Shown here one piece after another: positions 15,017-62,723 of a stretch of DNA of 64,000 bases (positions within the stretch are counted from its first letter, which is position 1; each line of letters begins with the position of its first letter). The translations under genes and the position numbers were made by a program. Source of the DNA: Hemiscyllium ocellatum (lineage: Eukaryota); assembly GCF_020745735.1 (NCBI RefSeq), contig NC_083404.1, positions 102,671,731-102,735,730 on the forward strand. The letters run 5' to 3'. The notes under the pieces were generated by a model. It did not search any database and had not been told where the DNA came from. It was given only the letters and a program-made list of their open reading frames with translations.

Positions 15017-16058
15017 CTGTAAGATAGGATTTATAAGAAAATTGATCAATACAGCACAATGTTAATCACAGTTATTTGTTTTCTGGCTGTGACAATTAGT
15101 TTAAAAGAAAGGCATTCTGCTTTTATAGATGTTAACAGCATACTTTTGTACACAGCAATACTACTTGTCCAGAATTCTAACAAAAATTTGTTCATATGTG
15201 GAGTTTGAATGAATATGGTATACACTAGCACAGACAGGGAATCTAGAGGACGTGATCTAGGAGATGAAGAAACAAGTAACGTCAAAGTGAATGATGAGTG
15301 TTCCCTATTTGAAATTTCCCCACAAGACTCGAAAAACTTATGATGAGAGCCATCAGGCTTTAATAAAAGCTAATAGAATCCATGCATGCATATTCTAATG
15401 CTGAACAAAATCACCATAACATCCTTCCACAAGAATGCAGTTAGGCTTCATTCAGAACATGACGTATGGTTCGAGACCTGTTTTGTGATGGAGAATTACA
15501 GGAACTTAAAAAAGGTCAGAGAAAGGCCATGAGAATAATACCAACTTTGAAATCTCCTAGCTATCAGCATAGAATTAGACAGCAGAAAATGTTTTCACCT
15601 AAATAACTGGACTTTGGAGAGATTTGAAAAAAAATATTAAAAGTAATGAAAGAGTTAGTCAAATAAGCACAGAACTATCTTAGATTGCAAGAGGTTTTTT
15701 TTCTATCAAGGATCATCAACCTCATTTTCTTTTCTCCAGTACTGTCCAGCTGTTTTCCTATGTTTTTGCACCTTTTAGGAGTTACTTTCCATTTGGGATC
15801 GTAATTCTTAATAACACCATGTCTGTATTGGAAATACTCAGTGGACTGAATGTCCTCTTTCCTCTCGTTTCAGATGTCTGCAATCCACAAGAATTTAATT
15901 CTTGAGTGGAAGTTAAATAAAAGAAAATTAACCATGAAGCTTGGGCAAATAAAGATAGCTAGCACTTGTGAGGAAGAGTCAGCTAGGAGAGTCTGCTGCA
16001 TCAATGCCCCCAAAGTACTTTAATTATTTAGATTTATTTTCATAGAATCATTACATAC

Positions 16059-16208
16059 CTAGAAGGACCAGCTTGGTTAGCGTCTCTGACTGGTCAACAT
16101 ATTCACACAAGGTAAATGAGGTAGGAGGGAGTGAAGGACTTGCCTCAATTTGCAAAGCCTCTTCTTCAGATAATTCATCAAATGGAGAATGAGGTGGAAC
16201 ATCTAATT
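16059..16208 (-). CDS. MTERF3: MTERF3 coding exon 2 ([10 protein letters not shown]...[11 protein letters not shown])
   Basis: 150 nt, AG/GT boundaries, phase 1-1, SEEEA.QI.A.P.LPP.SFTL..YVD.SETL.KLVLLG motif. Confidence 0.93.
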
Positions 16209-17944
16209 CTGAGATTTGAATAAAAATATTAAATTAACTGAAGAGTACAGTTGTAAAGCAGAACAGATGCAAAGTCCTCTTCATACTTAACACTTTTTTC
16301 TTTTAACCACACATGTAGTAGATTTCATGGAATTATAAGGCACAGAAATGGGCTATTTGGGTCAACCAGTCAATGCCAGTGGTTCTGAAAAATCATGCTG
16401 GACTCAACATTAATTCTGTTTCTCTTTTCACATATACTACCAGACCTGCTGAGTTTCTCCAGCATTAACTGTGTTTGTTTCATATCAGTGGTTTTGTTCA
16501 ACTTGAACCTTCTCACCTTACCTATTCAAACCTTTACTCCCTTCTCCCAAATCTGCTTGTTTACCTGTGCCTTGAATTCTTAACTATAGGATTTAACCAA
16601 ATCCTGTGGCAGGGAGTTTCACAATTCTTCAGGTAGATTGTTACTTTTGATTTCCCTTTTGAATGTGGTGACATCCTATATTGATGGCCTGTAGTTATGC
16701 TCTTCCCCACAAGAAGCAACTTTCCGTGAGCACTCTATCAAAATCTTTAGTAATTTTAAAGGTCTCCTTTCAGCCTTTTTGCCTAAGAATAATAGACTCA
16801 TCTGTTAATCCTTTCCTGCTATGTCTATCCATGCCTTTATGGTATCATCCTTATAATTCTTCTCTGCATTCTTTACAGTCTTACTCTATTTTTCTCTGAT
16901 AAGACACTTCTGAGTACTGAACCCTTTTGGTAACCTGATCCAATATCTCACCTGTCTCTGTGACATACATTGTTTATAATGCTCCTGTGAAGTGCCTGTT
17001 CATTACATTACAGATGTTATACAAGTTGTTGCTGTACAGCAATTTACATAATATAATGACCAGAACAATATGCAATACACTCAGTGTAGTCTAAGCAAGG
17101 TTTGATATAGGTTGAGCATAGCTTCCCTACTCTTCAATTCTGTCCCTCTTGAAATAAAACTAATATTTGGTGTACTTCATTTTTAATGACTTAGCTAACT
17201 TTTGGCACAACTTTTAGCAATTGTTGCATTTATTCTCCCTGGACCCCTTTACAGTGTACCTCCACCTCATGTAGACTGCACCTTCCAAGTAATTAGTGAC
17301 CTCCTTATTTTCCCTAGAAAATATAATCTGTGTTGAAATTGATTTGCCAATTATTTTTCCACTCTGCAAGTTTATTAATGCCCTTCTGTAATTTGTTAGC
17401 AGACTTCCTCAGAATTGAGTATCCATTCTCCCCCACTCCTGTCCGAATTTGCTTTTGATTCTAGACCTGTTTATTTCCATCAGTTTCTGTTTTCGTTTCC
17501 GATTTCCAGCATCCACAGTACCTTGCTGTTGTGATCTGTTAACCTTCCTACTTTCCTAACAATCATGAGGCACTTTATTTGTGGTCAATGTTGTAGAACT
17601 TCTCAGATCTAATGTGATTCTTAACACCATTCAAAAGTAAGACCTGTAAGTATGTAATCAGGAAACTCCATTATGAGACATGTATAGCTCCATTGAATGT
17701 TACTGGAACTAATCAATGTAATTTCTTTCAGCTCGATAAAAGTACAATGTAGTGCATCACTCATTCATACAATTTAGGGACATTACAAGTATCACGCAGG
17801 ATTTATGTACCTGTAATGTTGCTACCTCATGGGTGTGCACTGCATAGGTTTTGTCTGTAGTTTGAACACAATCACATCACAAGTACATGGAAGGGATAGC
17901 AATATATATCTAAATCTCAGGTGAAAACAGGCTTAAGCCTATGT

Positions 17945-60644: not shown

Positions 60645-61305
60645 TGTACACAGATCTCTGAAAGTTGCCACCCAGGTAAATAGTGCTGTGAAGAAGGCAT
60701 ATGGCGTACTGGCTTTTATTGGTAGAGGAATTGAGTTCCGGAGTCCTGAGGTCATGTTGCAGTTGTATAAGACTCTGGTGCGGCCGCATCTGGAGTATTA
60801 TGTGCAGTTTTGGTTGCCATGCTATAGGAAGGATGTGGAGGCACTGGAACGGGTGCAGAGGAGGTTTACCAGGATGTTGCCTGGTATGGTAGGAAGATCG
60901 TATGAGGAAAGGCTGAGGCACTTGGGGCTGTTTTCATTGGAGAAAAGAAGGTTTAGGGGTGACTTGATAGAGGTGTACAAGATGATTAGGGGTTTAGTTA
61001 GGGTTGACAGTGAGAAGCTTTTTCCACGTATGGAGTCAGCTATTACGAGGGGGCATAGCTTTAAATTAAGGGGAGGTAGGTATAGGACAGATGTTGGGGT
61101 AGACTTTTTACTCAGCGAGTTGTGAGTTCATGGAATGCCCTGCCAGTAGCAGTGATGGACTCTCCCTCTTTATGGGCATTTAAACGGGCATTGGATAGGC
61201 ATATGGGGAATAGTGGGCTAGTGTACGTTAGGTGGCTTGGGTCGGCGCAACATCGAGGGCCAAAAGGCCTGTACTGCGCTGTATTTTTCTATGTTCTATG
61301 TTCTA
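60645..61305 (+). mobile_element. CR1-type LINE 3' fragment (copy B specific, relatively young)
   Basis: LYKTLVRPHLEY.VQFW.P.YRKDV.ALERVQRRFTRMLPG ORF; (ttctatg)n tail; empty site at about 31955. Confidence 0.92.
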
Positions 61306-62723
61306 AAAGCAACCAAAGGTGGACATATATAGAATACAGTTGGAAAGATCTTAACAAGCAGAATAAAACAGAGTGTTGGGAAACAGGTTGAAACTATCTG
61401 TTACAGACACTCCATTCCAGCGAAAGAAGGACTCTTACTTCTACCTCAACACTTTCAGTTTTTACTGAATTAACTTTAACTTTCCCCAATTTCTGGAATT
61501 GGAGGCACTTTTACAATTCCTTTCTGAGTCTGCTAGCATGAGCTCATCATAATTTTGAGAAACTAAACTTTCTCAATTCTAACAATTTAATTCCTATTCT
61601 GCCTGCTTTGGCTTGTAAGTTCCATTGAGTAGAAACCACTTCTGCTAATGTCACTAGTTGAATTCCCCTGAACTGAGTTGATTGTTTTGTGAGGAGAAAT
61701 TGTTCTCTCTTGTGAATGAGCACTGGATTATTCTGAACTGAGACATGGAACCTTCTGTTTTGAAGTCAAAACTGAACTGCTTTTTTGAGTCATAGTTATA
61801 CAGTACAGAAACGGACCCTCTGGTACAACTTGTCTATGCCGACAAAGTTTCCCAAAGTAAACTAGTCCCGTTTGTCTGTATTTGGCCTATATCCCTCTAA
61901 GCCTTTCCTAATCATGTACCTGTCCAAATGTCTTTTAAATGTTTTAACTGTACCTGCATCTACCACTTTGCTGGGAGTTCATTCCACATATGAGCCATCC
62001 TCTGTGCGAAAAAGCTGCCCTTCAGGTCCCATTTAAATCTTTCTCCTCTCACCTTAAAAAATGCCCCCTAATTTCGAACTCCCCCACATAAGGTAAACAG
62101 AAAGGTCTTTTTCCTAATCTATACTCCACATGATTTTGCACATCTCTACAAGTAATGCCCTTCATGTTTTATTGTATCAGTTATGAACTCAATATTATAA
62201 ACATTTATCCATCAACTCTACAGGCTTCTCGCAAGTGCTTAACTGAAGTCATGTAATCTACCTGGAATTGACATATCCAGGTCACTATTCAAATGACTTT
62301 CTGATCTTTCTTTATTTAAAATAAAATCTTGACATAACTGACCAAAGTCCATCTGCCTCTATTTTTTTTGAAAATCCAAATTCCAGAAGTACTGTTGCAT
62401 ATTGTACATCTTAATGTGTAGTGACCTTGAGGCAATGCCGGATTTCTAATTGCTTCCTTACTATACCTGTGTGAAACTTGGTGTAATGGAGAGGTATTTA
62501 GGGAAATTTTCTAATCAACCTGTTCAGGGTTGTTATTACATCGCTCAGGAGCAAATGAGATGTGAACGCAGATCTCCTGGCTCAGATATAAGGACAGTAC
62601 CTGTGGAGCCCTGTGAGAGATATTTATATTATTCTGTTAATATGTTTTAAACTGTTAACTGCTGTAAATTACCTTTGAATTTATTCTTTATATGATGTAG
62701 CATTCCTTTTGTTTGTCTTTTAG

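Follow-up and report, generated by a model that had tools for sequence, protein, structure and literature searches.

A Tigger/pogo-derived gene between PTDSS1 and MTERF3 in sharks, with tandem duplication and partial gene conversion in a hemiscylliid

Pogo-derived host genes and the shark gene

A survey of pogo-derived genes in vertebrates lists 12 of them, and for cartilaginous fish it reports only JRK-like "pseudogenes" (Gao et al. 2020; PMC7386202). JRK, JRKL and TIGD2, 5 and 7 in that list share with the gene described here the CENP-B_N, HTH_Tnp_Tc5 and DDE_1 domains, a single coding exon, and a fixed locus without TIRs (PMC7386202). CENP-B and the fission-yeast proteins Abp1, Cbh1 and Cbh2 are likewise pogo-derived DNA-binding proteins, in yeast with retained paralogs (PMC4231638). 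The gene that we describe lies between PTDSS1 and MTERF3 in sharks, is absent from the 12-gene list of Gao et al. 2020 (PMC7386202), and stands in two copies, A and B, within a 64,000-nucleotide stretch of a hemiscylliid shark genome (assembly GCA_020745735.1), referred to here as the window. A literature search on the PTDSS1-MTERF3 locus or its transposase gene in sharks retrieved nothing specific.

Both copies retrieved Pfam matches to CENP-B_N, HTH_Tnp_Tc5 and DDE_1 (E = 2e-8 to 1e-10, 1e-16 and 2e-41, respectively), and both contain a DDxD triad in the motifs DETD (D181), LLLDN (D296) and QPMDQG (D329), the second and third aspartates being separated by 32 residues. From knowledge of these motifs, we take D181, D296 and D329 to be the catalytic residues. 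The Pfam domains and the triad together place the gene, by descent, in the Tigger/pogo superfamily. The D-D(32)-D spacing is the same as that listed for JRK, and the dN/dS of about 0.2 is close to the 0.207 reported for JRK (PMC7386202). Mammalian JRK is 43-47% identical to the shark gene. Nevertheless, JRK orthology was rejected, as the shark gene forms a separate, fully supported clade with a long stem of its own, mammalian JRK groups with skate proteins, and the locus is that of PTDSS1-MTERF3. The shark gene also differs from the JRK group in having been found only in galeomorph sharks and in being tandemly duplicated in one family. Its N-terminal 126 residues align to the DNA-binding domain of CENP-B (1HLV, E = 1e-7). 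CENP-B differs in that it has lost the catalytic triad and acquired a dimerisation domain at its C-terminus; in the shark gene, D-D-D is retained and the conserved C-terminus is a different one, and a centromere role is not indicated.

Orthologs of 595-598 aa that are 70-96% identical were found in C. punctatum (two), C. plagiosum, Stegostoma, Carcharodon, S. torazame and S. canicula. The order of PSS gene, ORF and mTERF gene recurs in five species besides that of the window, with Carcharodon showing mTERF only (10-kb flank); this comparison covered the loci of six species including the window's, from the Orectolobiformes, Lamniformes and Carcharhiniformes, with the S. canicula ortholog available as a protein only. 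In the tree, the shark clade is monophyletic (support of 100), matches the species tree, and is set off from mammalian JRK by its long stem. The 90% protein cluster consists of the two window proteins and Chiloscyllium orthologs only, the next-best matches being at most 50% identical at the protein level, and the protein-level search of shark proteins found no dispersed near-identical copies nor any other protein more than 50% identical. Within 3.4 kb around each ORF, only chance-level inverted matches were found in the search for TIRs. The 597-aa ORF is not a mobile element but most likely a domesticated Tigger/pogo gene specific to galeomorph sharks. The D-D-D triad is kept in A, B, Chiloscyllium, Carcharodon and Scyliorhinus. 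The Stegostoma ortholog carries a 1-nt deletion along with D296N and D329N, so that the gene, or at least its catalysis, is not needed in all lineages; no significant relaxation of constraint in Stegostoma emerged from a relative-rate test (31 vs 26 changes).

The tandem duplication and the fate of its host genes

An earlier note on this DNA had described a tandem duplication starting at 15506 and ending at 61493, and both of these positions agree with block ends in self-BLAST. The two copies lie in direct orientation as collinear blocks (A 15508-31957 vs B 40046-60639, at an offset of 24.5-28.8 kb), and fainter blocks extend to A 32137 / B 61493 and to A 33775 / B 62601. Divergence between A and B is a mosaic ranging from 0 to 22%. 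The private transposable element insertions that the note had reported are seen in both copies, e.g., at 22500-22615 in A and as a 2-kb insertion in B (Table 1). Exon positions come from tblastx comparison with the annotated locus of Stegostoma, from motif searches, and from Pfam matches of exon pieces.

Table 1. Features of the window (positions count from its first nucleotide)
Feature	Position	Strand	Details
Copy A	15508-35212 (at least)		5' part of real MTERF3, ORF-A, promoter A, decayed PTDSS1-A remnant; limits from self-BLAST and PSS exon 7
Copy B	39643-64000, past window end		UQCRB-B exon, truncated MTERF3-B, ORF-B, promoter B, real PTDSS1
MTERF3-A first coding exon	18690-19061	-	open; ORF continues into intron
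ORF-A	20668-22461	-	1794 nt, 597 aa, Tigger/pogo-derived; D181/D296/D329 present
Conversion tract, ORF core nt 432-1687	20775-22030	-	B equivalent 47349-48604; 8 differences in 1256 nt, dS 0.024
Unconverted DNA-binding region, codons 1-145 of ORF-A	22027-22461	-	B equivalent 48601-49035; dS 0.147
Conserved putative acceptor motif, TTATTCTCAG/GATATAG	22462-22500	-	28-35 nt upstream of ATG; B equivalent 49036-49072; also in Stegostoma
Low-divergence promoter/CpG-island stretch of A	22954-23853		0.7-2% divergence; B equivalent about 49719-50620
CpG island A	23300-24000		GC up to 0.67, CpG o/e 0.8-0.9
PTDSS1-A exon 3 remnant	26004-26048	+	two residue changes; the second, G to S, in splice-donor site
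PTDSS1-A exon 4 remnant	29548-29670	+	Pfam PSS profile 12-48
PTDSS1-A exon 7 remnant	35120-35212	+	Pfam PSS profile 154-182
UQCRB-B exon	39643-39810	-	in-frame TGA 39724-39726; Pfam UCR_14kD match either side of stop
MTERF3-B pseudo-exon	43219-43575	-	TGG>TGA at codon 22 (43510-43512); 15-nt deletion
B-private 2-kb insertion	43863-45901		same repeat also at 1-965 and 2395-3320
ORF-B	47242-49035	-	1794 nt, 597 aa, Tigger/pogo-derived; D181/D296/D329 present
CpG island B	50100-50800		GC up to 0.71, CpG o/e up to 0.96
Real PTDSS1 (B) exons 1-6	52631-52810, 53136-53228, 53353-53397, 56007-56129, 59143-59301, about 62742-62840	+	

The same note had called all three host-gene duplicates dead, and each of the lesions that it listed is present: MTERF3-B has the codon-22 stop and breaks off at 40046, where its likeness to A ends; the UQCRB exon has its stop, flanked by UCR_14kD matches; and PTDSS1-A retains exons 3, 4 and 7, with exons 1, 2, 5 and 6 found in B only. 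However, it was the duplication boundaries themselves that cut PTDSS1-A and UQCRB-B short, which leaves MTERF3-B as the only fair control.

The retention of acceptors and promoter regions, also claimed in the note, was borne out, each copy having the acceptor motif ahead of the ATG and, 0.9-1.5 kb upstream, a CpG island. A 34-bp repeat, open in each of the three frames, fills the CpG island. Since the promoter/CpG-island stretch is only about 70% identical to that of Stegostoma, its low divergence between A and B is more likely the result of conversion than of constraint. The public annotation of the window's assembly calls both ORFs as genes, and gene models are found in three public annotations overall. 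The C. punctatum annotation models both ORFs as MTERF3 "isoforms", and these models imply transcripts that have the MTERF3 5' exon in common. Such models are indirect evidence of transcription, and both copies may be expressed.

Constraint, gene conversion and the age of the two copies

ORF-A and ORF-B differ at 36 nucleotides and 17 amino acids and have no indels between them. Gap events in non-coding paralogous sequence occur at 4.8 per kb, which gives 8.6 expected per 1794 nt against the 0 found in the ORFs (P = 2e-4), in line with the earlier description of two intact, indel-free ORFs. The dN/dS is 0.23-0.24 against Stegostoma, the sole outside source of locus DNA for the cross-species codon tests (C. 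punctatum was compared as protein), and 0.25 between A and B, values that show the coding sequence to be under purifying selection.

The ORF core and the promoter are 0-2% apart between the copies, whereas the surrounding sequence is 4-15% apart. Within the ORF, the N-terminal region has a dS of 0.147 vs 0.024 in the core (Fisher P = 3e-4), and nt 1-431 alone hold 23 differences. When the proteins of the window are set beside those of C. punctatum, seven sites between residues 3 and 118 are of the orthology type, with paralog-specific residues (3, 12, 14, 18, 75, 77 and 118) common to the two species, and four sites between residues 319 and 591 are concerted, with species-specific residues found in both paralogs. 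This resembles the partial concerted evolution of other tandem paralogs, in which tracts of 0-2% divergence lie beside old divergence and converted paralogs both carry species-specific residues; unlike those cases, the genes involved here are putatively domesticated transposase genes, and the region escaping conversion is the DNA-binding domain. The direction of conversion, if readable at all, is from B to A and not from A.

The earlier note had allowed that conversion from A might fully explain the integrity of the ORFs. Conversion is real in the core and promoter, but codons 1-145 are unconverted, and they too have 0 indels where 5.1 would be expected (P = 0.006). Branch dN/dS in these codons is 0.15-0.26, with polarised changes of 6N/6S in A and 4N/7S in B, although these branch-wise tests draw on only 11-20 changes and are weaker under strong transition bias (P = 0.02-0.12). 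The constraint on codons 1-145 and the shared paralog-specific residues support the note's central suggestion, namely that the duplication yielded a second functional gene in a manner consistent with selection for two copies.

The copy number in related species, to which the note had pointed, gives a view of the age of the pair. C. punctatum has two distinct intact 597-aa proteins at matching positions, one copy adjoining PSS and one deep within the MTERF3 gene model. The B copies of C. punctatum and the window species cluster together (SH-aLRT 98), which indicates that both copies have been retained since before the two species split. In C. plagiosum, a single copy was seen, between real PTDSS1 and MTERF3, so that either the second copy is dispensable or that assembly collapsed.

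Competing explanations and a proposed history

If the ORFs were copies of an active or recently extinct transposon, their youth would keep them intact, the D-D-D triad would be expected to survive as it does, and the public names "jerky-like" and "TIGD2-like", which are also applied to transposable element copies, would be apt. We regard this as extremely improbable, because the ORF sits beside, or between, the same genes in all six species with examined loci across three orders, the search for TIRs was negative, the phylogeny is species-tree-like with a long private stem, the dN/dS is 0.24, close paralogs elsewhere were absent from the protein search, and the copies arose along with 20+ kb of adjoining host sequence and not via transposition. 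We accordingly rejected an active transposon. An assembly artefact (an uncollapsed haplotype or false tandem join), which the earlier note had named as a way in which its reading could fail, could likewise point to the one copy in the C. plagiosum assembly, but it is hardly credible in the face of divergence reaching 13-22%, different deletions and private transposable element insertions in each copy, and an independent C. punctatum assembly with the same two-copy layout and matching paralog-specific residues. The divergence mosaic and this second assembly led us to reject it.

It is also unlikely, albeit less so, that only one copy is functional and that the other has been kept open passively by conversion erasing its lesions, with no selection for two. 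Such a process would produce a core and promoter that are nearly identical amid diverged surroundings, as well as species-specific residues in both paralogs, and C. plagiosum manages on one copy. It does not account for codons 1-145, which are unconverted at a dS of 0.147, hold seven paralog-specific residues conserved in two species, and are still free of indels and constrained on each branch, nor for the neighbouring MTERF3-B exon, which lies 1.6 kb off and was not rescued. Conversion from a selected copy could nonetheless have helped to hold the other copy's core open.

The account that we think probably correct as a whole is that of a domesticated Tigger gene that underwent an ancestral tandem duplication, after which both copies were selected and partly converted. 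A Tigger-derived gene would have become fixed between the divergent PTDSS1 and MTERF3, with its own ATG, an acceptor 28-35 nt upstream, and, about 1 kb before the ATG, a CpG-island promoter that most likely serves MTERF3 as well. In a hemiscylliid ancestor, a large tandem duplication with one end within UQCRB and the other at PTDSS1 exon 7 or beyond would have copied the whole transposase-derived gene and the whole of MTERF3, with PTDSS1-A and UQCRB-B incomplete from the outset. MTERF3-B would then have decayed, acquiring its codon-22 stop and losing its 3' exons, and both transposase-derived genes would have remained open under purifying selection. The N-terminal CENP-B-like DNA-binding region diverged, the B lineage gaining H12R, T14A, S18L and H77R, and was kept distinct in two species; the catalytic core, C-terminus and promoter have been repeatedly homogenised by ectopic gene conversion. 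Of this account, the layout of the locus, its synteny, the constraint, the duplication common to two species and the mosaic of conversion are established by the data. Beyond these, we infer that both copies are expressed; the protein would bind DNA in a sequence-specific manner and might retain nuclease activity, and the two paralogs would prefer different targets.

A fuller version of this account, which we put forward tentatively and with less than even confidence, is that the gene is an undescribed thirteenth vertebrate pogo-derived host gene, domesticated apart from JRK/TIGD more than about 150 million years ago, with its triad intact and driven by the MTERF3 promoter, and that selection against conversion keeps the DNA-binding domains of the hemiscylliid paralogs distinct, giving them different targets, with the core evolving in concert.

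For sharks, whose genes of this kind had been dismissed as pseudogenes, the locus would lengthen the short vertebrate list by a domesticated transposase that is lineage-specific and long conserved. It also offers a natural experiment, in that one event duplicated two complete genes and only the transposase-derived one was kept, so that selection on a domesticated gene can be judged against a control from within the same event. Finally, the contrast between the core, which was converted, and the DNA-binding domain, which was not, points to the part of the protein in which the paralogs may differ in function.

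A Tigger-family gene at a conserved shark locus

Four ORFs of at least 200 aa were found in the window, two of which are the paired minus-strand ORFs derived from a Tigger/pogo transposase, ORF-A and ORF-B, one in each copy (A and B) of the tandem duplication. As the earlier note had stated, both are intact, each being open over 597 aa, and they align without an indel, with 36 nucleotides and 17 residues differing. Pfam CENP-B_N, HTH_Tnp_Tc5, and DDE_1 match both alike, and ORF residues 13-138 align to the CENP-B DNA-binding domain (1HLV, E = 1e-7). Each ORF is called as a gene in the annotation of assembly GCA_020745735.1. 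Terminal inverted repeats were looked for around both ORFs, and none were seen.

A homology search covering 5.8 billion proteins found close relatives in sharks only, all of 595-598 aa: Chiloscyllium punctatum (two proteins, 96-97% identical), C. plagiosum (97%), Stegostoma tigrinum (83%), Carcharodon carcharias (75%), and Scyliorhinus torazame and S. canicula (about 70%). Beyond these orthologs, the best remaining matches were at most 50% identical. The gene has not moved: of six species examined at this locus, five have it between PSS (PTDSS1) and mTERF (MTERF3), with almost equal distances to both across the five, and in Carcharodon, the sixth, mTERF alone is called inside the 10-kb flank. 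A tree of 41 proteins recovers the shark sequences as a single clade (SH-aLRT 100) with a long stem; the clade agrees with the species tree and stands apart from mammalian JRK. The same tree places skate "jerky-like" proteins (Amblyraja, Leucoraja) as sister to mammalian JRK with support of 99-100, at odds with the mammalian origin published for JRK. The dN/dS against Stegostoma is 0.23-0.24, and the motifs DETD, LLLDN, and QPMDQG (D181, D296, D329) are present in every species but Stegostoma. Given the shark-only close relatives, conserved locus, absence of terminal inverted repeats, separate clade, dN/dS, and motif retention, the ORF is a domesticated Tigger-family gene of galeomorph sharks.

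The Stegostoma ortholog (10001-11793 of its locus, L001) carries the substitutions D296N and D329N and lacks 1 nt at ORF nucleotide 480, outside any long homopolymer; its overall amino-acid rate is not higher (31 vs 26 changes). In this lineage the gene may be degenerating, or its function may no longer depend on catalysis.

Extent of the duplication and fate of the host genes

The window has a G+C content of 40% and no N runs. Self-BLAST revealed a direct collinear duplication pairing A 15508-31957 with B 40046-60639, with private insertions and deletions widening the offset from 24.5 to 28.8 kb. Weaker duplicate blocks follow, reaching A 32137 / B 61493 and then A 33775 / B 62601, and the start (15506) and end (61493) reported in the earlier note match ends of self-BLAST blocks. 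These tail blocks (31955-32137 / 61305-61493 and 33687-33775 / 62514-62601) are 78-79% identical, against a typical 94-95%. One 2-kb insertion private to copy B belongs to a repeat family with two further copies at 1-965 and 2395-3320 (mutual identity 85-91%); a weak GIY-YIG match (E = 0.07) in a 302-aa ORF at 57-962 hints at a Penelope-like element.

Host-gene exons were mapped with the single-copy Stegostoma tigrinum locus as a guide and with Pfam on exon pieces.

Features of the two copies in the window
Feature	Position	Strand	Detail
ORF-A	20668-22461	minus	1794 nt, 597 aa
ORF-B	47242-49035	minus	1794 nt, 597 aa
MTERF3-A first coding exon	ATG at 19061	minus	open
MTERF3-B stop	43510-43512	minus	TGG>TGA at codon 22
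Real PTDSS1 (B) exon 1	52631-52810	+	
Real PTDSS1 (B) exon 2	53136-53228	+	
Real PTDSS1 (B) exon 3	53353-53397	+	
Real PTDSS1 (B) exon 4	56007-56129	+	
Real PTDSS1 (B) exon 5	59143-59301	+	
Real PTDSS1 (B) exon 6	about 62742-62840	+	
PTDSS1-A exon 3 remnant	26004-26048	+	
PTDSS1-A exon 4 remnant	29548-29670	+	
PTDSS1-A exon 7 remnant	35120-35212	+	Pfam PSS profile 154-182
UQCRB-B exon	39643-39810	minus	TGA at 39724-39726; Pfam UCR_14kD on either side of stop
B-private insertion (repeat family)	43863-45901		2 kb; between MTERF3-B and ORF-B

Each lesion described earlier was confirmed, as were the private insertions: PTDSS1-A lacks exons 1, 2, 5, and 6, the UQCRB exon carries its stop, and MTERF3-B has both its codon-22 stop and a truncation, homology to A ending at 40046, together with a 15-nt deletion. 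One end of the original unit fell within UQCRB and the other at PTDSS1 exon 7 or beyond, with all of MTERF3 and the ORF in between, so it was the duplication event that cut PTDSS1-A and UQCRB-B short. Complete copies were made of MTERF3 and the transposase-derived gene alone; the contrast drawn earlier between lost host genes and surviving transposase genes is therefore fair for MTERF3-B, the sole fair control, and not for the other two.

A transposase relic of ~120-180 nt with stops, matching ORF residues 305-363, lies in the MTERF3 intron directly past the first coding exon (18548-18664 and 43017-43193, minus strand) and also in Stegostoma (L001 13825-13965). Being common to both copies and Stegostoma, it is a fragmentary copy of the transposase gene, older than the duplication.

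Gene conversion and constraint on the two copies

Among related species, C. punctatum has two copies, C. plagiosum appears to have one, and Stegostoma has one. The outer copy of C. punctatum lies 3.3 kb from the real PSS gene, like B, and the inner copy lies deep within the MTERF3 gene model, like A. At residues 3, 12, 14, 18, 75, 77, and 118, window A agrees with the inner and window B with the outer copy, and the B proteins of the two species group together with support of 98. As such, both copies have been open since before the species split.

The A/B divergence is a mosaic along the unit. It is 3-7% over most of the length, falls to 0-2% in the ORF core (A 20775-22030) and a promoter stretch (22954-23853), and rises to 11-17% in an "old" class totalling 2635 nt (mean 13.2%, 11.8 gap events per kb) and to about 22% in the two short tail blocks. 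The duplication may thus be far older than most of its sequence indicates, most of it having been homogenised afterwards. Synonymous divergence is not lowered by purifying selection; dS is 0.147 in codons 1-145 vs 0.024 in codons 146-560 (Fisher P = 3e-4), and residues 319, 320, 554, and 591 are species-specific yet common to both paralogs, which together indicate that gene conversion homogenised the core once the two species had separated. The promoter stretch differs by 0.7-2% between A and B but has only ~70% identity to Stegostoma, so its A/B likeness is better explained by conversion than by constraint.

Conversion was a challenge to the earlier proposal that selection keeps two transposase-derived genes, and it does explain the near-identical cores. 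It does not explain the openness of both genes, for which the unconverted N-terminal third is a clean test. Polarised with Stegostoma, codons 1-145 carry 6 non-synonymous and 6 synonymous changes in A and 4 and 7 in B, giving branch dN/dS of 0.26 and 0.15 (binomial P = 0.02 and 0.003 when rates are taken as equal; 0.12 and 0.02 when a transition bias is conservatively allowed for). No indels occur there, against 5.1 expected at the old-class rate (P = 0.006), and none in the whole ORF, against 8.6 expected at the average rate (P = 2e-4). Constraint in both lineages where conversion is absent, along with the shared duplication, supports selection for two copies, qualified by the partial conversion, by MTERF3-B being the one fair control, and by the single copy seen in C. 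plagiosum.

In C. plagiosum, the one ORF lies between the real PSS and mTERF genes, and its protein has an A-like N-terminus, with M35 in common with the C. punctatum A copy. It retains the outgroup V185, R192, and S350; the window species and C. punctatum have I185, Q192, and T350 in each of their two copies. The simplest reading, a tentative one, is that C. plagiosum would have lost copy B, through unequal recombination upstream of the ORF or through assembly collapse, and that B would then have overwritten the A core independently in the window-species and C. punctatum lineages.

Expression, function, and place among pogo-derived genes

The putative acceptors and promoter regions are kept in both copies, as had been claimed. 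Each copy has a CpG island (o/e 0.8-0.96) 0.9-1.5 kb upstream and a conserved acceptor motif, TTATTCTCAG/GATATAG, 28-35 nt ahead of the ATG, which Stegostoma also has. An A-private insertion of ~115 nt (22500-22615) directly upstream of the acceptor is bordered by duplicated TTGAGCAGACC.AATTATTCTCAGG, which gives copy A two instances of the acceptor motif. A 34-bp tandem repeat fills the CpG island (23581-23900 in A; 50346-50733 in B, with more units) and reads as one ~34-aa peptide, identical in all three minus-strand frames; because it is open in every such frame, exon 1 cannot be placed from sequence alone. Transcription would start from the CpG-island promoter in common with MTERF3, with a 5' exon spliced to the acceptor ahead of the gene's own ATG. 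The C. punctatum annotation models the gene as MTERF3 "isoforms X1/X2".

From its domains, the protein is probably a CENP-B/JRK-like sequence-specific DNA-binding factor and may have retained nuclease activity. Four substitutions of the B lineage within the DNA-binding region (H12R, T14A, S18L, and H77R) may shift which targets the protein prefers. The catalogue of vertebrate pogo-derived genes lists 12, the shark ORF not among them, and for cartilaginous fish mentions JRK-like "pseudogenes" alone (PMC7386202). The shark gene is thus an addition to a known kind, domesticated pogo/Tigger genes, and the pair is a further case of another, duplicate retention with partial concerted evolution.
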